Notes under the pieces: model-generated
What the model was told of the DNA's origin: nothing
Seen by the model: the letters and a program-made list of their open reading frames with translations, nothing else
Databases searched by the model: none
From: Bugula neritina
Taxonomy: Eukaryota > Animalia > Bryozoa
NCBI GenBank assembly: GCA_964035545.1
Contig: CAXIUT010000140.1
Span: 1-11,170 of the forward strand
DNA: 11,170 bases
Reading direction: 5' to 3'
In this document: positions 1-11,170 of the stretch, in pieces
Position numbering within the stretch: position 1 is the first letter of the stretch
Layout of the letters: every line of letters begins with the position of its first letter
Program-made: the position numbers and the translations under genes

Positions 1-75
1 CCCAACCCCAACCCCAACCCCAACCCCAACCCCAACCCCAACCCCAACCCCAACCCCAACCCCAACCCCAACCCC
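1..75 (+). repeat. Left telomere, (CCCCAA)n
   Basis: Uninterrupted C4A2 tandem repeat at the very start of the window. This is the Tetrahymena-type ciliate telomere repeat, in the correct C-rich 5' orientation. Confidence 0.98.
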
Positions 76-285
76 ATACAGAATGGAATAAATAAAATAT
101 TTTAACTTTTTGATGATGATAAAACAGGATCTATTAATGTAAAAAATATCAAAAGAGTAGCTAAATAACTTGGATAAACCATGAGTCCTCAATAACTATA
201 AGAAATGCTTCAAAGAGCTGCCAGTAATGGCAAATAAATCACAAAAGATGACTTCTATGAAATCATGACTAAAAAATCATTCTGA
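76..285 (+). CDS. Centrin-family EF-hand protein, C-terminal fragment only (5'-truncated by the telomere)
   Basis: With TAA=E it reads NGINKIFELFDDDKTGSINVKNIKRVAKELGETMSPQELEEMLQRAASNGKEITKDDFYEIMTKKSF-TGA(283-285). It has EF-hand loop DDDKTGSI and the centrin signature KRVAKELGE. There is no in-frame ATG before the EF-hand. Bases 76-81 may be an intron remnant rather than coding. Confidence 0.9.
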
Positions 286-385: not shown

Positions 386-797
386 TCAACCTCTTTGAGG
401 GAACAACATAACTCTAAGAGTAGATCCCATAGCTCTTGCTGGTAAGTTTTTGGCAAATCTTGCAAGAACAGCTCCATTGTTTCCGTGACTGGTAGCAATT
501 CTTCCCCAAATGGTCTATTTATCATATGATTTACTCTGAATCTGTTATCAGCTTTTCCGGAATGAGTTTTGTAGATGTATGCTACTCTTTTACCAAAGTA
601 GTAACTAGCAGCTGATCTATCATTGACTCCTTCAAGTTTCAAGATGTTTTGGTTGGTATTTTGTGCGACTTTAGATCTACTTTAAACTTGATTTACCTTC
701 TGAAGCTAAGGAATTTAGCTCTAACCCAGAGTCTGACCTGCTTTCCTCTCTTGGGTTTAGATATTTTTTTTTATTTAGAAGCTACTTTATCAGCCAT
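386..797 (-). CDS. RPL35A: 60S ribosomal protein L35a (eL33), 123 aa, 2 introns
   Basis: MADKVASK...[49 protein letters not shown]...[46 protein letters not shown]. 20-nt GT-AG introns at 677-696 and 515-534 restore the conserved frame. Confidence 0.96.
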
Positions 798-1076
798 GTG
801 GTTTTTTAATTAATGATTATTATATTTGGAAAATCAATTAATATCAACAATACCTCAATCTATCACAAACAATATTATTTTAATTCATTTGACAGAAAAT
901 AAGTTTTTTCATCTTTTCCTTATCTTAATCGAATAATTATTAATAATATCTATGAATATTCATCATTATAATTTTATTTTTATTTTTTGATCTAATTGAT
1001 CATGAATATGATAATTCATTTAAGATAATTTATTGAGTGAGAATATAAGTTGATTCTATCATAATTTGAAAGCAAT

Positions 1077-1837
1077 TCAAACAATACTTTAACTTTTAAG
1101 CATCCTTGTAATAAAAATAACTTGAAGGCAAGAAAGAAACACAATAAAAACAGATTAAAATGCTTGAAAATAAGAATACGATGTAGATTGATGAAGCACA
1201 TATTTACCTATCTGCTGATCAAGAATATGACCTGTTACTGACTAAGTAAAAGCATTCTATATCATATCAATATTACTTATAACTTGGCTAAAGCATAAAA
1301 TAATTTTTGTTCAGCTTACAACATCTAACTCTTCTTAGCTGCTGTCTTAGGAGGATTTATCTTCTGACTCACTCTCATTATTATCATCTTTTTATTGATT
1401 GCTTGATTATTGCTTTATATTTTGATTTAATAAGTTGTTTTAGCTGTTGCATTGAACTTGAATCCAGTCATCAGGTAAAATGTATCTCTAAATATGACAT
1501 TTCGTTTATTAAATGTAATAGTAACAGTGACGTCTTATTTATCTTGTACTCTGGCAAGTAAATAAACATTATTTTGCTTCCAAAATACATCGAAAGAACC
1601 ACTTATTTATTCATCGACTTCAGGTAGTAATATAAATTAAGAATGTCTATCTAGATCAAAACTATTCTGCTAGTATATAGTTTTTTATATATGACTTTCT
1701 GAACGTTTTTAATTTTATCTATTTTTAACTTATTAATAAGGATCTTCCTCCTATAGAATAGGAGTTCCATCATTGTTGTGCCCCTTAGCGCAAAGAGATA
1801 AACTAACAAAAAGACAGAAGAGAAAGATTCGAATCAT
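1077..1837 (-). CDS. p24/TMED (emp24/gp25L) family type I membrane cargo receptor-like protein, 246 aa, 1 intron
   Basis: N-terminal signal peptide MIRIFLFCLFVSLSLC, a beta-rich GOLD-like middle, a helical linker, and C-terminal TM FESVFIVFLSCLQVIFITRML with the p24-typical E and Q, ending in a short tail ...SIV-TGA. 20-nt intron at 1257-1276. Confidence 0.75.
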
Positions 1838-1890
1838 TAGTTAATAATTATTATGTGTGATAATTATTTGAAGTAAATATAATTTGAATA

Positions 1891-3335
1891 TCATTTGATT
1901 GGGTTTTTCATTTCTGACATATCGAATACTATCAAATATTTTTAATTTAAAAACACTGAAGGATATTTTCTATTTATAAGAGGAAAATAAGTTCCAAAAG
2001 TACCCTAAACGCTAGGATTGTTCAATATTGATTATATTATCATTTATGCTACTTATTTATTTTCTACTATATACTTTTTATCAATTGATTAAAATGTGAT
2101 CTTTCTTGGTTGCTTTTTGGTTGTTTGAACTAACAAGATATCTCCCTTTGATTATATCTTTGCTACTATTATTAATTAAAAATGTGCTATAAGTAATGTC
2201 TCTTGATTTGACTTTATGTGACATTTATAGGGAGTTTCTATGTATATTTAAGTTTAAGAAAATTGAAAAATATTCGTTTTTGAGATGTTTTAGATTTAAC
2301 AGTGAATATTTATTGATTAATTTGCATAAAAATTGTCAGCATAAGGAACTGCATTGCCTAGATCACCCATATATAACTGAAACTATTGAGTTTGCCATGA
2401 ATTATCAAGAGTTATATTCAAAAGTCCTCGTTTCAAGCCTTCTAAAATAGATAACTTAATAGTCTATAAAGTAAATATTTCAACAATTCCACCATACTAG
2501 CTTTATTTAAATGATGAAGGAAGTACTTAGCAATGATCTTGTTAAACTGAATCAATTCCAAAAGATAAATAAGCAACTATTCCATGATCTTTACTTATTG
2601 ATATATTATGAACTTTATTTATATATTTCAAACTAATATTTTTGTATTCTAGTGGAATAGTAGAACTATAGAAGAGTTTATCTGAGTTAATGAACTGCCT
2701 TAACTAGTTTTTGAAGTATTTATTACATTATTTATTGATATTTTATCTGATATCATCAACAGGGACTATATTATTCAACATTTGCTCAATAATTTTATGC
2801 TAATATTAAAGAATTCCATTATTCTATACCACCCACAGTGCACTAAATGTTAACTATTTATCTTACACTACATTCCACTCATAATTTTAATTCTCTTTAA
2901 CCAACATTTTATCAAAAACCAAAGGATCAAAATAAGAACTAGCATAAGCAATCCCCTCTTTAATAAACTTATTAGATTGATCAGTAACATTATACTTCAT
3001 TTAAGACCAAATTCCAATAACTCCCATTCTTACTCTAATACTTGTACTATCTAATTAGATAAAAATATACCAAGATAACTCTACTTTTGCCAATGCTTAT
3101 TATAAGTCAACTGATATTGAATATCTATCAAATGATAGATATTGTCACTATTAGGATCATGATAAGTAAGATTGTAAGAAGATAGTTTTTTCGATATATT
3201 GTGAAAAAGGTCTTCAATGTGATCTCGGTTGGCAAGAGCACCAAAAGAAAGATAAATCGCTTTTTGAGGAATCTAACAAATAGATAGGATTTTTATTGTG
3301 AAGATCGTCAGAAGAAAAATGATATGATTTATCAT
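1891..3335 (-). CDS. Secreted protein, probable BPI/LBP/CETP (TULIP) lipid-binding family, 474 aa, 1 intron
   Basis: A TGA-free 475-codon frame appears after removing the 20-nt intron at 3051-3070. It has a signal peptide (MINHIIFLLTIFTIKILSIC) and several N-x-S/T sites. Its length and the segment GLLNITLD...LYMGDLGNAVPYADNFYANESINIHC resemble the BPI C-terminal domain by eye. The gene is solid; the family call is inference. Confidence 0.6.
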
Positions 3336-3362
3336 TTAATTTAGTAATATTATAATATATAA
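3336..3362. promoter_or_regulatory. Putative ultra-short divergent promoter/5'UTR spacer (27 nt)
   Basis: Almost pure A/T spacer between the head-to-head ATGs at 3335(-) and 3363(+). Depends on both start-codon calls being right. Confidence 0.45.
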
Positions 3363-4241
3363 ATGTTATCAGATCAAAAATCATTTCTCAGTCTATAGAA
3401 ACTCTAAGAATAACTTCTCTATGAATACAATAAACTAATCAACAACTAACAAATCAAACTAATCAATAGACAAAGTATAGTATACTCATAGCTTCCTTAG
3501 TCAGTGCCATCAAAAATAAAAAAATAAAATAAAAAATGTATAATTCTCAAGAATTGTTCAGGATTCTAATTGATGACTTTTTCACTAATGTAATTTTTAT
3601 TTAGACATTGTACGAAAGATAGTAAAAGGATTTTATAAAAGATAAGATAGAATATATGTAATTAAAATTTTATGTTTGGAAGTTGGTATATTAAGGGTCT
3701 ATTGATAAACAATCTTAAAAAAATGGCATAAAATATATAATACAATCAACCTGTTATCAATATCATCAATGATGTTGATTCTTTAACTGCTTTTTCATAA
3801 TTTTGGAAAGAATTGATTGAATAATATAGCTAAAATAATTAATAAATTATATCAGAATCATTCTATATTGACTATTTCAGTGTTATTAGTAATTATTTGG
3901 AAATAGGTTTTCATTTATATTAAAAAGATAAATTATAAATAAAATAAAAAATTATAAAACCTTTCAATAATAAAACCAAAATACCTTTTATATAAATAGT
4001 TATTAATATATAATCTAACAATGTTTAAATATAAAAGAGTTAGGAAAAGATGAAATGCATAATAATCGTTGATAAACAAAACAAATAAAATATAAAACAT
4101 TAATTCAATATCTAATCAAATACTGAATTAGAAAATAATTAATATAAGAAATTAAAAGCTCAAGCCTGGTAGACAAAACAAAAAGGATGGTAACTAGTTA
4201 AGTAAATCAAATAATTTTCAAATTAAATATAAAACATATGA
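3363..4241 (+). CDS. Hypothetical protein, 292 aa, apparently intronless
   Basis: ATG at 3363 to TGA at 4239-4241 with no in-frame TGA over 293 codons in the UAR=Glu code (MLSDQKSFLSLEKLEEELLYEYNK...KLKAQAWETKQKGWELVKEIKEFSNEIENI). It fills the space between neighbours. No recognisable motif. Confidence 0.7.
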
Positions 4242-4318
4242 TTTTTATCATGTAAATATATATTTTTATGATTATTTTGAATTAATAGTTAAAGTTTTAG
4301 ATAATATTAACAAATTGA

Positions 4319-5112
4319 TCAAAAGTAGTCATCCTATTTGATTTATAAGGCTGTAATATTTTTAATCTATAATTCATAAGGATTACAACTAAATATCCTA
4401 TTTTGAATCTCAATATTCCTCTCCTTCAAAGAATCACAAATATTCTGAGTCGATACAATAGCCATATTCAACAAACCAACTTCCTTCTTATTCCTCAACT
4501 TCTTCTCTTGCTGCATCACCTCATTAGAATTAAAAACCTTCCTCAACTACTCTATCTTCAATCGAATATCTTAAGAAATATCATCTAAGACTCTATTGAT
4601 ATTTCTATCCAAAATACTCAACTCTCCTCTGAGTATACTAACTTCATATTTTTGACTTTTAAGCTCCTTAGTTGAAATATTTATCAATTTCTAAATAATA
4701 TATTTTTTACTTATATGTACCCTACAGGAGCAACCATAGTATTGAGATAACTAAAATCTGATGAATTGTTATCATAGAGATTATCAAATCGAGGTACAAG
4801 AGTAATACTTTCCATATTTTATTTATCCTATACATTTTATTTAATATAATCTCTACTCATAAAAGATGTAAATGTTTGTAAATAGCTATCTCTTTTTTTA
4901 ACATCTGTTGTCCTATTCTGTGACTGCTTTAATTTTTTAAAATGAGTCAAAGAACCCAGTCTATCTGCATTGATAATTGAACGAGTTTTTTGTTTTGATA
5001 AATCTGATCTAGCATTCTAACATGCAGATAATCCTCTAGTTTGAATAGAATATTTAACTGAACGGAAACGAGGACGAAATGAACTGATTTTCTTATCTGA
5101 ATCAAACTACAT
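4319..5112 (-). CDS. Hypothetical protein with basic Ser-rich N-terminus and C-terminal coiled coil, 257 aa, 1 intron
   Basis: MEFDSDKKISSFRPRFRS...; consensus 20-nt intron at 4691-4710; heptad-like second exon (ILRGELSILDRNINRVLDDISEDIRLKIEELRK); TGA at 4321-4319. The start codon is the best candidate and is not proven. Confidence 0.75.
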
Positions 5113-5306
5113 CTCAATAATTATACTATTATTTTTAATTTAGTATTACTCTATTATTCTATTCTTCCAAAAAGCTCATAAAAAAAGAAAGATTCTTTAT
5201 TATTTAATTACTTCATTAAATAAAATAGATTTAAAAAAGCAAGATATTTTCTTTAAATAATAAGATTTTTAATAATTATAGAGTAAAACTTTAATAAATA
5301 AATTTA

Positions 5307-6743
5307 ATGTAAATCCCGTAGCTGGTCTCAACAATCCATCTCAAAGATTCAATATCATTCACCTTAAATTCATAAGTACATCATTTCCAATCTAGTTTTT
5401 AAACCATAATTTTGAGATAGTAAAACAATGTTTACTACGTATCAAAGATCTTGAAACAACAATGGGAAAATAACAAACGAATATCAGTAAAATATAGAAT
5501 AAACTGAATGAAATCTAGAATAAAGTAGAAGACAATATCGGATAAATAAAAATCAATAGTCAAAAAGTAAAATAGTTTAGCAATAACATAGGAGATTAGT
5601 TTATGGTATTTTTTTGATTATATAGAAAAAAATGTATGGAATATAATAAAAGACAAGAAATATGTTTGATTTCAAATAAACAGTAAGAAAACTATAATAA
5701 CTAAATAAATTTGTATAAATTGATAAATTCTAATAAAAAAATAAAGAAGTCGATTAATAAATATCTAAAATATGGAAAATAAAATAATAATTCGAAAGAT
5801 ATGTTCCACACACCATCTTAAACGATTATAAAACATAAATATAAAATACTTTTGCACATAAATAATAAAAAATAAAAAATACTAACCAAGAAATCATTAT
5901 TCTTTAATAACAAATTAATAAAATTAATAATAATATCACTGGAATTGATAGTTAAATCAAATCTAATAATAATATGCTAAAATAAATTAATTTTGTATAA
6001 ATGTTGTAAAAACTAAAGAAAACTAAAGATTAAATGGATGTTAAATTATCATAATTTTCTATTAGAATTAAGAAAAAAGCAGGAGTTAATTAACTATTAA
6101 CTTTATAAAAATTAATGATTTAAAAATTAGATAACTTCCTCGCTTAAAGCTAAAAAAATAAACCATAAAAAATATAAACTAAATAAGCATTTCTCTATCT
6201 CTAAAAGAAAGTATTCAATATTTTATTTAGATTATCTAACTACAAGCATTTATTGCCTGGAAATTACCAGATTAATAAAAAGATGCTTTATTCAGTACTA
6301 AAAAATGGCAATGTGCCTCATGTACAAAAGATATCGGTAAATTCTAAGGAAAACTTGGTCAATATCGTCCATGGTCGATATTCCCATGCAAAGAACCAGA
6401 TCCAGAAAAATCAGGAGGATTTGGATACTTGAACTATATTGACAAAATGGCTTATAAGAAAGGAACTTATCTTGATGACCAAAACATGGACAGACTAAAC
6501 AAAACATACAATGATTCCAAATAAACTCCAAGAAAAGCTACAAGATAGTCAAATATATTGAGTAAATTCGGTTCAGAATAAAGAAAATCAAGTTTGAAAG
6601 ATACATACTTCCGCGATGTAATATCCTAAAGAGGATAAAGACCAACTTTAAAACAATTCAGAGTTCAAAAAAAAGAAGCAGCTAAACCTAATTAATAAGA
6701 CCTTTAATCTGATGTTAAATAAAAATCACCAGAAAACAAATGA
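5307..6743 (+). CDS. Long coiled-coil protein with C-terminal CASC motif, 458 aa, 3 introns
   Basis: The frame is open from ATG 5307 to TGA 6741-6743 after removing 20-nt introns at 5376-5395, 5606-5625 and 6211-6230. An E/K/N/I-rich coiled coil is followed by DALFSTKKWQCASCTKDIGKFEGKLGQYRPWSIFP. Confidence 0.82.
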
Positions 6744-6777
6744 TCTTTAACATATCAAATTTATATAATAATAACTC

Positions 6778-7256
6778 ATGATAAAATTGTTGATTCTTTT
6801 AGATTTAGTCCTGGCTGTTTATACAGGAACCGATAACAAAGATGATAACTAGGAGTTGGTTCGAATGAGAAGAACGTCTTGCCTTATCATAACTAGAAAT
6901 TATCTTAATTCACTTCATAGCAAAATAAAAACTATGATGGCTGATAAGAGTTAAGCTGATTAAAGGATTCATATTGCTAAATTTTATGGATATTTAGGAT
7001 AAATATGTGAAGAGAATATCAGTTAATCATAATTACAAGAAGTATTGATGAATATATTTAGTTTTATATGGAAGATAGTGATTTGCAAGTGTAAAACTTT
7101 TATTATTTATTTTCTGATGTTTCATTTGTTGAAGCTTTAAGTGATTTGACTTTTAACGATAAACAAAAATAAATACTCAAGTTCCATCAGTAGTTTGATA
7201 AAAAGAATAAAAATCAACAAAATAAATAAAAATCAAAAGATTCAGAATAATTTTGA
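6778..7256 (+). CDS. Small signal-peptide protein, tandem paralog A, 152 aa, 1 intron
   Basis: MIKLLILLDLVLAVYTGTDNKDDNEELVRMRRTSCLIITRNY...YLGEICEENISESELQE|FYMED...KDSEEF-TGA. Intron at 7042-7061. Colinear with the paralog at 7386-7873. Confidence 0.88.
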
Positions 7257-7385
7257 TCAAATTCATTAGTTTCTAAAACACTTCTATTATCTATTAACAT
7301 TTTTGTATATTTTTTAAATGAATATTTGTAATAATCGAGATCAATTCAAAAATAACATTTGATTAACATCATAAAATATAAACTA

Positions 7386-7873
7386 ATGATCAAAATATTC
7401 ATAATCTTAGCTTTGATTCTTCTTCTTCACGCAGGCACATAAAAAAAAGATGATAACTAATAACTAGTTCGAATGAAAAGAACATCTTGCCTTGTCATTA
7501 CTCGCCATTATGTCCTTTCATTCCAAAACAAATTGAAAACTCTAATCGTAGATATGCACTAAGATGACCAAATGGCACATATTTGGAAACTGTATGGGCA
7601 TCTAGGATAAATATGCTAAAATAACATCAGTTAGTCTTAAATACAAGAAGTATCTATCATTTTATTTAGTTTTACACACAAGAAAATTAATTAGTAATTG
7701 AAAACTTTTTTTACATGTTTTCTGACTTTTCATTGATTGCTACGTTAAACGATTCGACTCTTAGCGAAAAAGAAAAAGAAGTTATTTAATTTCATAAAAA
7801 TTTTGATTAAAAAAATAGTGAAGAGAAAGGGAAAGAGAAAAGTAAAGAATAAATATATTTTGAAGATTTTTGA
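7386..7873 (+). CDS. Small signal-peptide protein, tandem paralog B, 155 aa, 1 intron
   Basis: MIKIFIILALILLLHAGTEKKDDNEELVRMKRTSCLVITRHY...HLGEICENNISESEIQE|FYTQE...IYFEDF-TGA. Intron at 7650-7669, in the same position and phase as in paralog A. Confidence 0.88.
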
Positions 7874-8015
7874 TCAAATATAACATTTAATATGATAAAT
7901 ATATGAGTCATCTATAATAAGCTAAAATATTCAACATTCTTTGTATTTTACAATAGATATAAAGAATAATTAAACCAATAGAATCAACTATCATCAATAA
8001 TTTATTAAAACCATA

Positions 8016-9875
8016 TCAATTAGCTGACTTCTTACTCTATATATTACTTGCCATCTAATTCAACACTTCCTTCGTATACTCAAATCTACATACCATCAAT
8101 AATACCTCTTAATTAACTCCCGATTATCACTCTGCATTATCTCAGATAAACCATACTCATTCTTCTACTTGTACTTGTTCGTGTACAACAGCTGCTTGCT
8201 TATTGAATTTATCAACAACTCGCTCTGATCAATAAATATAACCTGAACTGATTTGTTATTCAACCTGAATATTACAGCATGCTTTGATCTGAACCATCTT
8301 CTCACATAGATCAATTTCTTTTAGTCGAAATCTCTACCTCGGTATGCTAGTTTGTTTTATCCTTCAGTTTGCAGGTATCCTTTGAAATGATTGAAAAGAC
8401 TCACCTTTTTCTTCAACTCAAAAGGATGGTCTTTAAACGGATACTTTTTGATGATATCTTCTTTATCTATCCTTTAGATATAGTAGAAAAACTATTAAGT
8501 GAAGGTAAGCATTTTAGTTGAGTCATTGAAGTATACTCCAATCATATTATTACTGAGAGCATATCCTATTCCATACTTAGAAGAATAATCTATCCATTTT
8601 TTAACTGTTATATTTGTATCATTCTAATATCCCATCTTTCTGGGTGTTTTTTCATAATTACTTTTGCAACTATCCTTTAACACTCTTTGACTTCTAGCAC
8701 GACCAATATCTTTATTTTGAGTGGTAGATCTATTGACAGAACTGGCTCTTTCAGTCGCTAAAAACTTATCCTGACTCTTCTGGCACATATCTCGACTAGT
8801 TCCCTGAATAAAATAACAAATACAAATTAATTATTGGTATATAGTTTACCATTATCGCTTCTAAATAAATATAAATGTACAACTATCGTTCATCTTTGTT
8901 GGCTGACATCGATCGCTGAGTAGTGAAAGATATCGATGGCTGTCTCACCAAATTCACTTCAGTAAAGAAATCAAAACTTTTTAGCTATCTTAGAGTAGGT
9001 CTCTTATGAGGATCTTTCTGTAAAATACTAGATACTAGATTCTTCAAACTAGTCGATGTATTCACTTGATCAGGAAACGAAAAAGAACATTATTTTATCT
9101 TTTTGTAGGTATCTTTGACCTATTTCGACTCGAATGGAGGTCTTCCATATACCAAAGTGAAGATAATAACTCCAAAACTCCAAATATCAACTTAATAACT
9201 ATGTCCTTTCGATTATAAAATTTAAGGAGCGATATAGTTAGGCGTCCCACAGATAGTTTTCTTTTTCTATCCATAAAAATCAATTTTAGTAGCCAATCCA
9301 AAATCACCCAACTTAACACACATATTATCACCTAAAAACATATTGCCCAACTTAAGATCTCGATGCACTATCTTCTGACCATGCAAATACTACAAAGCAT
9401 CCAATACCTGCAGCATGAAATACTTAGCTTCAGATTAACTAAATCGTCTCTTCCTCTTGATCATATCATTTAAAGTCTAAATAAATTATGAAATACCTTA
9501 TTAGTGCAAAGTTCAAGTACAATATAAACGTTGATGTTGTCTTAGAAATTATGTAAAAATTTAACCACGTTTTTATTATTGAGACTTTAATGAATTTTAA
9601 TCTCACTCATCAGCTAAATATTAGAAGAGATACCTTTTGTTTTGATCTTTGTTTTACTAGACTTGATTTTTGTATAATTTTAACAGCATAGATTTATTTA
9701 GTTTATTATGAAATAAGTTAATAGCATCGAGCAAATCCTCCCTTCCCCAAAAAATTACCCTTCCGGTATTTAGTAACAGTATTATTCTCGAAACAGTGAT
9801 CCTCAATCACAAATAGATTTTAATGTGCTGACTAAGATTATAAATACGATCGGGCTGAACAGCCTTGGAACTCAT
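8016..9875 (-). CDS. PLK: Polo-like serine/threonine kinase, 579 aa, 6 introns
   Basis: Kinase motifs [34 protein letters not shown](E), GHSY(E)VDIWS. Polo box 1 [29 protein letters not shown]; polo box 2 [25 protein letters not shown]. 20-nt introns at 9828-9847, 9614-9633, 9477-9496, 8861-8880, 8804-8823 and 8086-8105. Confidence 0.95.
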
Positions 9876-9936
9876 TCGACTAACGATATTATAATTTATA
9901 ATTAAAAAAATAAATCTTTAGAAATTATGATCATCA

Positions 9937-10884
9937 TCAAGAATAGATTGTATGCTTCTAGATGTTCTACTACATAGTACCATCAGAATAATATATCTGA
10001 GTATACTTCTCAGTCATCTTAGACCCCTCATCATGATACACCTTGATATTCTCCTTCTTCTCACTTATCTTCTTACCCTTGCGCTCACTCATCTGACCAG
10101 GATTCAAAACTGAACCCTTTGAAGGAATATTGCTCTATAACTCACTAAATATTCCATTATTCTTAGGCTCTCTATTATATTGATTTTTCACATTTTTTGA
10201 AATATCAGTCCTAACCATATCTTTTTCTGGTTTATAGGCACTTTTAGCCTGATTAAAACAACCAGAAGGAGAACTACTCGCCTGCGATCCCTAATTTAAA
10301 TTCGAATGAGCACCTCTGATTTGAAGTTTATTTTCTGTCAAATTAAAAACAGTGATAATTTTATCATTTTGAACTGCAGATTGACAACCTATATATCTAT
10401 ACAGAGGATTAAACAATGTTTTTCTGTGTCCCCTATCTTCCACTCCATCATCAATGATTAATCCTAGGATAGTCATTTCTGCATAGTTTCTTTTATCCAA
10501 ATAGAAATCAGCTCCAATGATTTAAGCCATGGCTCCTTGTCCTTTTTTACATACTTTCAAAATTCTATCACTAAATGAAGATTTGTCAGTGCCAATATGC
10601 CCAAAAAGATTATTCTTCGCAAGATCTGTCACATGATTTCTAGCTGAAGTATTCAATCCTTAATGCATTTAGAAAGCAGGTAATGTAGCTTGTTTTTGCA
10701 TAAAATGTTTAGCCTCTTTCCAAGCTTTAACTCCTTCATTAGTTTAGTATATCATGTCTTAATTGATAGGTATTTCTTTATCATTAACAAAGGTTTGTAG
10801 TTGTCTGTCGATAAGATTCACATAGTATGATGGAAGCTGACGTGCCAAATTGATATATTTAACCATTTAGACTTCTTCAGTCAT
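9937..10884 (-). CDS. CAP/SCP (cysteine-rich secretory protein-like) domain protein, 315 aa, intronless
   Basis: INLARQLP...TNEGVKAWKEA...GLNTSARNHVTDL...FGHIGTDKSSFSDRI...MA(E)IIG...LIIDDGVEDRGHRKTLFNPLYRYIG matches the protist/bacterial-type CAP domain. It has a low-complexity C-terminal extension and no obvious signal peptide. It ends TGA TGA TGA. Confidence 0.88.
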
Positions 10885-10972
10885 TATTCTATGATTAGAT
10901 TTTAGAATATTATACTAATCGATTCGAATATCAAAAAAAAAAGATTTTATAGAAAATTATATTATCATTAGA

Positions 10973-11170
10973 GGGGTTGGGGTTGGGGTTGGGGTTGGGG
11001 TTGGGGTTGGGGTTGGGGTTGGGGTTGGGGTTGGGGTTGGGGTTGGGGTTGGGTTGGGGTTGGGGTTGGGGTTGGGGTTGGGGGGGTTGGGGTTGGGGTT
11101 GGGGTTGGGGTTGGGGGTTGGGGTTGGGGTTGGGGTTGGGGTTGGGGTTGGGGTTGGGGTTGGGGTTGGG
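10973..11170 (+). repeat. Right telomere, (GGGGTT)n
   Basis: About 200 nt of G4T2 repeat running to the end of the window, with two longer G-runs (G7 near 11080, G5 near 11113). Confidence 0.98.

Follow-up and report, generated by a model that had tools for sequence, protein, structure and literature searches.

How does a spliceosome find the branch point of an intron that is only 20 nucleotides (nt) long? The question is raised by contig CAXIUT010000140.1 of the Bugula neritina assembly GCA_964035545.1, an 11,170-nt stretch of DNA (its full length is hereafter called the window) whose genes are interrupted by 16 introns of identical length, each with an adenosine at position 15. An original prediction had described this adenosine as a branch point fixed at that position, with no branch motif and with little U2 base-pairing. 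Based on the homologous loci described below, we consider it likely that the 20-nt elements are U2-type GT-AG spliceosomal introns of a peritrich ciliate, near-fixed in length, and that the adenosine sixth from the 3' end (-6) is their branch-point adenosine.

Sixteen 20-nt introns share one interior adenosine

Introns were called independently of position 15, from GT..AG ends, restoration of the reading frame and homology. Continuous open reading frames (ORFs) in the window required 16 interruptions, every one of them exactly 20 nt. All 16 start with GTA, while 14 end with TAG and 2 with CAG; the invariant positions are 1-3 (GTA), 15 (A) and 19-20 (AG), and position 18 is a pyrimidine. Consistent with U2-type GT-AG introns, these splice ends were found in all 16 and in all orthologous introns identified, and removal of the elements restored frame and protein. 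The length of 20 nt is 3n+2, meaning that retention shifts the frame, and it leads to a premature TGA for 15 of the 16.

The original counts at position 15 (A in 16 of 16) and position 14 (T in 13 of 16) were reproduced exactly from gene models that we built independently. The remaining interior positions are 53% T, 32% A and 15% G+C. At the A frequency of 0.27 found at these other positions, an adenosine in 16 of 16 introns would have a probability of ~1e-9. Strings of the form GTA...TAG occur 19 times at a length of 20 nt, versus 1-8 times at each other length between 12 and 40 nt and 6.9 +/- 2.7 times in shuffles. The 20-mers of this pattern that are not introns carry an adenosine at position 15 in 2 of 5 cases.

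Support is strongest for RPL35a intron 2 and is strong as well for the six introns of the polo-like kinase (PLK). RPL35a intron 2 (515..534, minus strand; 20 nt, GTAAATCATATGATAAATAG; A15 at 520) divides a single domain, with positions 13-58 of the Pfam Ribosomal_L35Ae profile matching the upstream exon and positions 60-95 matching the downstream exon in a different frame. Intron 1 of the same gene (677..696, minus strand; 20 nt; A15 at 682) joins ...FLSFRR to SKVAQNTNQ..., and splicing at both sites gives a continuous L35Ae protein of 123 amino acids (aa).

When the six PLK introns, all 20 nt and on the minus strand, are removed, the result is a protein of 579 aa that has a kinase domain and two polo boxes. 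Intron 1 (9828..9847, with a CAG acceptor; A15 at 9833) is found at aa 9, phase 1, in 16 of the 16 relatives that cover the site; the adenosine is at -6 in 15 of these and at -7 in one. Introns 2 (9614..9633; A15 at 9619) and 3 (9477..9496; A15 at 9482) both lie within the kinase domain, the former at aa 74, phase 0, in 14 distinct relatives and the latter at aa 113 in 16, and splicing of intron 3 restores the junction ...LELCTNK|TLNDMIKRK. Introns 4 (8861..8880; A15 at 8866; aa 311, phase 2, in relatives) and 5 (8804..8823, again with a CAG acceptor; A15 at 8809; aa 324 in 9 distinct relatives) must both be removed before the kinase frame can continue into the frame of the polo boxes. Intron 6 (8086..8105; A15 at 8091) is present at aa 556, phase 2, in 13 distinct relatives.

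Two introns have moderate support. The geneC intron (1257..1276, minus strand; 20 nt; A15 at 1262), called from the window sequence alone, links the ORF of a secreted protein to a C-terminal exon that encodes 53 aa, among them a hydrophobic segment, and its retention leads to a TGA after 15 nt. The geneD intron (3051..3070, minus strand; 20 nt; A15 at 3056) links a signal-peptide exon, which includes 63 codons without TAA, TAG or TGA, to a 386-aa main ORF in a different frame. A 17th candidate (5107..5126, minus strand), also a GTA..TAG 20-mer with an adenosine at position 15, is probably no intron. It overlaps a geneF start codon that is conserved in the syntenic relative L001, which has neither the upstream exon nor the intron, and a 2-nt insertion allele at 5179 would break the supposed upstream exon.

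The adenosine is anchored to the 3' end

A 51-aa polo-box query identified 25 metagenome loci representing 17 distinct relatives, with 65-74% DNA identity to the window and, in some cases, synteny with it. PLK introns in these loci were located with a protein-guided spliced aligner that is blind to intron interiors and that returned all six window PLK introns exactly. The relatives' introns lie at the same six codon positions and in the same phases as those of the window. Only distinct orthologous introns were counted for length and adenosine position.

We found an adenosine at -6 in both of the 19-nt introns, in all 43 of the 20-nt introns and in 8 of the 9 21-nt introns. This adenosine is position 14 in the 19-nt introns and position 16 in the 8 21-nt introns; position 15 is A in none of the 2, in 43 of 43 and in 2 of 9, respectively, and -7 is A in 2, 11 and 2. 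Among the 20 introns of 22 nt, A occurs at -6 in 10, at -7 in 15 and at position 15 in 12, and all 4 introns of 23 nt have it at -7 and none at -6 or at position 15. Since -6 is retained in introns of 19, 20 and 21 nt, it is the 3' distance that is fixed and not the 5' distance. The conserved adenosine is anchored to the 3' end rather than to position 15. The original claim thus stands as to the invariance of the adenosine and its place 6 nt from the 3' end, and needs correction as to the anchor, because position 15 does not hold at 19 or 21 nt.

Further orthologous introns come from L001, which has an adenosine at -6 in 5 of 5 (three in geneG and one each in geneH and geneF, of 20, 22, 20, 20 and 20 nt) and at position 15 in 4 of the 4 that are 20 nt long. 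The corresponding window introns, again all 20 nt, restore or link coding frames. Those of geneG, on the plus strand at 5376..5395 (A15 at 5390), 5606..5625 (A15 at 5620) and 6211..6230 (A15 at 6225), each restore the frame at the position used in L001, where the second is the 22-nt intron; in the window this second intron contains a TGA that is reached on retention. The geneF intron (4691..4710, minus strand; A15 at 4696) links two long ORFs at the same codon as in L001 (aa 134, phase 0). The geneH intron (7042..7061, plus strand; A15 at 7056) occupies a site common to the L001 orthologue and to the paralogue geneI, whose own intron (7650..7669, plus strand; A15 at 7664) has the same QE|FY junction; the frame downstream of it is conserved between the two paralogues.

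Apart from the adenosine, the intron interiors have lost resemblance to one another. Pairwise identity of intron interiors is 0.28-0.47 for orthologous introns versus 0.27-0.45 for non-orthologous ones, compared with 1.00 at A15. That the interiors are fully diverged yet A15 is constant implies that the adenosine is kept by selection and not by recent common descent.

Unbiased length spectra of GTA..YAG strings in L010-L013, L016 and L023 also peak at 20 nt, and A is at position 15 of these 20-nt strings in 82-92% (L010-L013) or 59-67% (L016 and L023), chance matches not subtracted. Lineages seem to differ in the length at which their introns are set. One subclade, L017-L022, is the source of most 22-23-nt introns; it uses the same PLK positions and has no 20-nt GTA..YAG peak. 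In the introns of this subclade the conserved adenosine is at -7, often within TTAAY.

Some aligner calls were set aside. In L017-L022, the variable linker of PLK gave GTC/GTT 'introns' of 27-60 nt, which were discarded as aligner artefacts; an 18-nt GTA...CAG call in L022, away from the six conserved sites, was also discarded. At site i4, the calls of 26-27 nt in L014, L023 and L024 probably consist of a 20-21-nt intron together with additional codons.

Could the invariance reflect chance, or introns picked to share a pattern? The GT..AG windows of the original prediction may have been chosen by eye, which leaves room for such ascertainment, and that prediction named a fall of A15 to background levels in a larger set as grounds for refutation. 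No dilution occurred among the 43 distinct orthologous 20-nt PLK introns. The introns were moreover redefined by frame, Pfam adjacency and the interior-blind aligner, and the adenosine is present in 16 of 16, 43 of 43 and 4 of 4 introns as against 2 of 5 non-intron 20-mers. We therefore regard an artefact of this kind as scarcely credible.

Introns are precisely present or absent among orthologues

A protein search with RPL35a recovered both read-through and junction-exact forms. The intron 2 insert is precisely absent from orthologues P0004, P0005 and P0008, the intron 1 junction occurs without the insert in P0001, and both introns are absent from P0014-P0017 and from L026. A second locus, L027, has a 20-nt intron at an RPL35a site (GTAATTAATTATTTATGCAG, with A15). 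Intron-less L026 and intron-bearing L027 share ~85% identity and come from different species, and the comparison therefore shows precise intron presence and absence, not splicing. Relative to L026, the first exon of L027 carries two insertions of a single base each, which disrupt the LWVRAKF frame; L027 may be a pseudogene or contain a sequencing error or some other anomaly.

These observations bear on whether the elements are spliceosomal introns at all, as opposed to products of faulty assembly or sequences that are dealt with by leftover DNA elimination or by bypass during translation. The four sequencing runs that carry the chromosome are DNA and gave no sign of removal at the RNA level, the one point in favour of such explanations. 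Against DNA elimination, the elements are found in macronuclear DNA that is capped by telomeres and again in each of four independent DNA runs; they are therefore not eliminated DNA. The GTA...YAG ends, the conservation of positions and phases across 17 relatives, the precise presence and absence in RPL35a orthologues, and the frameshift and early TGA that follow retention of nearly all of them argue against the non-spliceosomal explanations more generally. We consider these explanations very improbable and continue to treat the elements as U2-type introns.

The four runs show about 1% allelic differences. One allele, T>C at 5393, changes the acceptor of geneG intron 1 from TAG to CAG, and another, A>G at 9484 (T>C when read on the coding strand), alters PLK intron 3 at interior position 13. 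The intergenic spacer of geneF and geneG (5179-5233) holds a cluster of small indels. Among the differences listed, no allele hits an A15 position.

The adenosine register resembles a decayed branch site

In the window, the context of the adenosine is mostly TTTAT, and none of the 17 window candidates has YTRAY, CTRAY or TACTAAC at this register. The original claim that there is no branch motif is accurate for the AT-rich window. It does not extend to the GC-richer relatives, where the -6 adenosine is the A of CTAAC, ATAAC or TACTAAC (e.g., TACTAACATAG, CCTAACTTAG, CCCTAACGCAG, GTAGTAATTTACTAACATAG and CTATAACCCAG). Among the relatives' 54 introns of 19-21 nt, we identified YTRAY at the -6 register in 7, a pyrimidine at -8 in 45 and a pyrimidine at -5 in 48, a pattern that resembles the yUnAy consensus. 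Potential pairing of these introns with the U2 GUAGUA averages 3.43 of 6, versus 2.89 +/- 0.16 in shuffled interiors. Taken as a whole, the clade seems to show the decay of a canonical branch site and not a system that works without a motif.

GUAGUA is kept in the U2 of all ciliates examined, including three peritrich genomes (PMC13685798). Searches of the window and of 11 loci turned up no small nuclear RNA, U2 included.

A different role for the -6 adenosine is conceivable: a protein or the catalytic core could recognise it within a longer 3' splice-site signal (A-Y-N-Y-A-G), with branching at another A farther upstream, for instance at positions 10-13. Fixed spacing to the AG is what such a signal would show, pyrimidines are enriched at the flanking -5 and -3 positions, the window lacks U2 pairing at the -6 register, and position 10 is A in 10 of the 17 window candidates. 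However, the adenosine in relatives is exactly the branch A of CTAAC/TACTAAC, one subclade moves it to -7 with YAG unchanged, and no upstream position is conserved. Furthermore, 4 of the 54 introns lack any further A from position 5 to -4 and so offer no alternative interior adenosine. We judge an extended 3' splice-site signal with upstream branching to be unlikely. The invariance of the -6 adenosine, its anchoring to the 3' end and the CTAAC-like motifs in relatives instead fit a lariat-forming branch adenosine, and this role is very likely, though inferred.

Several observations weigh against this assignment. The -6 position is not universal, in that the 22-23-nt introns have A at -7 in 19 of 24 and at -6 in 10 of 24. 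U2 complementarity at the adenosine register of the window averages 2.76 of 6, compared with 3.15 in shuffles; this bears out the little base-pairing originally proposed, and it is also no better than chance. Some window introns have another plausible adenosine nearby, e.g., the second A of a CTAAT, which is at position 16 in geneD and at position 13 in PLK intron 2. Finally, the chromosome was found in four DNA runs and in no RNA run; over 4950-10949, the four gave DNA contigs without joints, and both splicing and the branch site are inferred.

A model based on spacing

If the -6 adenosine is the branch point, its 2'-OH would attack the 5' splice site to form a lariat with a 15-nt loop (G1 to A15). 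The tail after the branch adenosine would be 5 nt, N-N-Y-A-G, with three bases separating the adenosine from the AG. The constrained quantity would be the spacing between branch point and 3' splice site; on the 5' side, the separation of splice site and branch ranges over 14-17 nt among the relatives. In the AT-rich species of the window, the branch consensus would have decayed to (T)TAT. Such a decayed consensus suggests that the branch is probably picked mainly by its position beside the 3' splice site and not by U2 GUAGUA pairing. Selection of the adenosine by spacing rather than by pairing thus seems probable from the sequence patterns.

In structures of the C* and P complexes, the 3' AG is read by non-canonical pairing, in which its A pairs with the branch A and its G pairs with the 5' G. 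Viewed against these structures, the three-base bridge left by a 5-nt tail is plausibly a physical minimum.

A broader form of the model is that peritrich spliceosomes define introns by geometry and not by sequence. Under this model, the determinants would be a GTA donor, a YAG ~20 nt farther on and whichever A lies three bases before the AG. U2-branch pairing would be largely dispensable, and the 5-nt tail would be a physical lower limit on spacing that heterotrichs and peritrichs reached independently. We put this forward tentatively, as a possibility that we find somewhat less probable than its being wrong. If true, geometry-defined introns would make peritrichs a natural system for studying the minimal working dimensions of the spliceosome active site.

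Relation to other short introns

The closest parallels are the tiny introns of heterotrichs (Stentor coeruleus and Blepharisma; 15-16 nt). Stentor introns have a presumed branch A at -6, with a 10-11-nt lariat and a 5-nt tail (PMC9505925), and in Blepharisma the presumed branch A is A10 of 15, GTAAWWTTTATWTAG (PMC13685798). The original comparison of the -6 geometry with Stentor is upheld, as the window introns have the same 3' distance (PMC9505925). As in heterotrichs, the introns described here have a GTA donor, a TAG acceptor, an AT-rich interior, a near-invariant A sixth from the 3' end and a 5-nt tail, and the distance from this A to the 3' end is kept as length changes (from 15 to 16 nt there and from 19 to 21 nt here). 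The two kinds of intron have a 3' half, TATWTAG, that is all but the same (PMC13685798, PMC9505925).

The differences from heterotrichs concern length, loop and lineage. The loop is 15 nt here versus 10-11 nt there, and all 16 window introns are 20 nt and those of relatives 19-23 nt, unlike the modal 15-16 nt of heterotrichs. Heterotrich introns are preferentially of 3n length, with in-frame stops and in phase 0, whereas 20 nt is 3n+2. The introns are also denser here (16 in 9 genes), and they belong to a distant lineage (Oligohymenophorea: Peritrichia) with a different genetic code. The feature works like the heterotrich branch site, and it is outside the heterotrich class by length and by length class. 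That peritrichs share a 5-nt tail with Stentor and Blepharisma but have a 15-nt and not a 10-nt loop suggests that tail length, and not loop length, is the hard limit. The geometry common to the two groups, which the original prediction took to be convergent, may also be ancestral or the product of a physical limit that both share.

The intron-poor protists Trichomonas and Giardia have a fused branch/3' splice-site motif, ACTAACACACAG. There, as here, the branch A is at a fixed and very short distance from the AG (cited in PMC10946202), and some relatives of the window approach these fused motifs (TACTAACATAG or CCTAACTTAG). The two differ in that a strongly conserved 12-nt motif lies in long introns in Trichomonas and Giardia, whereas a degenerate motif lies in a whole intron of 20 nt here.

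Among other ciliates, Paramecium and Nyctotherus have short introns (20-33 nt) that are similar in their GTA...TAG ends, tiny sizes and 3n depletion, through which retention gives premature stops (PMC2633312). Those introns are spread in length, in contrast to the single length and invariant A of the window, and neither a branch motif nor a fixed A has been reported for Nyctotherus (PMC2633312). Euplotes and Oxytricha have a relatively conserved A near the 3' end that has been interpreted as the branch point (PMC10946202), but their introns are ~30 nt and more and variable in length, with the A only above 50% conserved.

The literature that we searched says nothing about introns of 20 nt in peritrichs or about an adenosine at -6 in them; the only mention is of three peritrich genomes in which intron lengths are distributed narrowly (PMC13685798). 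As annotated genomes of peritrichs are available, their authors have probably come across the pattern. Introns this short are found in few lineages, and each is a natural experiment on the minimal RNA needed by the spliceosome. The relatives identified here form a graded series, from 19 to 23 nt in length, from canonical CTAAC to bare TAT and with A at -6 or -7, and thus provide comparative material on when U2 pairing becomes dispensable. The rule GTA, N11, A, N2, YAG (20 nt) would also permit accurate gene prediction in peritrich genomes and metagenomes.

The window is a macronuclear chromosome with a peritrich genetic code

The window starts with (CCCCAA)n repeats (1..75) and ends with (GGGGTT)n repeats and a few irregular units (10972..11170). 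As telomere repeats are present at both ends, the window is a complete small ciliate macronuclear chromosome of 11,170 bp with C4A2/G4T2 telomeres and about ten genes. It is AT-rich (GC 0.20-0.33).

The genetic code was examined in PLK alignment columns from 18 sequences, the window and its 17 relatives. TAA and TAG encode Glu, TGA is the sole stop codon and no in-frame TGA was found. At conserved Glu columns (e.g., APE, SYEVD, VLELC and FEDN), TAA and TAG alternate with GAA and GAG. Of the sense codons that share a column with TAA, 44% encode Glu and 18% Asp; for TAG, the shares are 57% Glu and 20% Asp. All window gene models terminate at TGA. The code of the window is the peritrich nuclear code (NCBI table 30), and reassignment of both TAA and TAG to Glu is known solely from Peritrichia (PMC10553269). 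Oligohymenophorea sp. PL0344 was ruled out as the source, since it has a median intron of 57 bp and reads TAA as Lys (PMC10553269). Under this shared code, the proportion of Glu spelled TAA/TAG ranges from ~9% (L024, GC 47%) to ~84% (L009, GC 24%). A search for Glu-tRNA(UUA/CUA) found none in the window or loci.

The genes are, in order, a 5'-truncated EF-hand ORF, RPL35a, geneC, geneD, geneF, geneG, geneH, geneI, PLK and an intronless conserved gene. geneC and geneD encode secreted or membrane proteins, and geneG encodes a Glu/Lys-rich coiled-coil protein. For the intronless gene (9937-10884), a 'CAP/SCP' label given by eye was dropped, as Pfam searches with its pieces gave no support. Between geneD and geneF is an interval of ~900 bp (3400-4320; GC ~20%) with no convincing gene, unusually long for a compact chromosome.

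The EF-hand ORF (76-285, plus strand) encodes a C-terminal EF-hand pair, lacks a start codon and is continuous with the left telomere. It is centrin-like by eye, with a Pfam EF-hand_6 match of just E=0.023 on a 20-aa piece, and chromosome fragmentation seems to have cut through the gene. geneH (6778-7256) and geneI (7386-7873), both on the plus strand, are tandem paralogues that encode small secreted proteins and share an intron site; L001 has a single syntenic orthologue. The right telomere tract contains odd units (GGGTT, GGGGGG and GGGGGTT) at 11040-11110. In relatives, the syntenic block occurs on contigs of up to 82-96 kb (L013 and L025), indicating that chromosome size varies widely within the clade.

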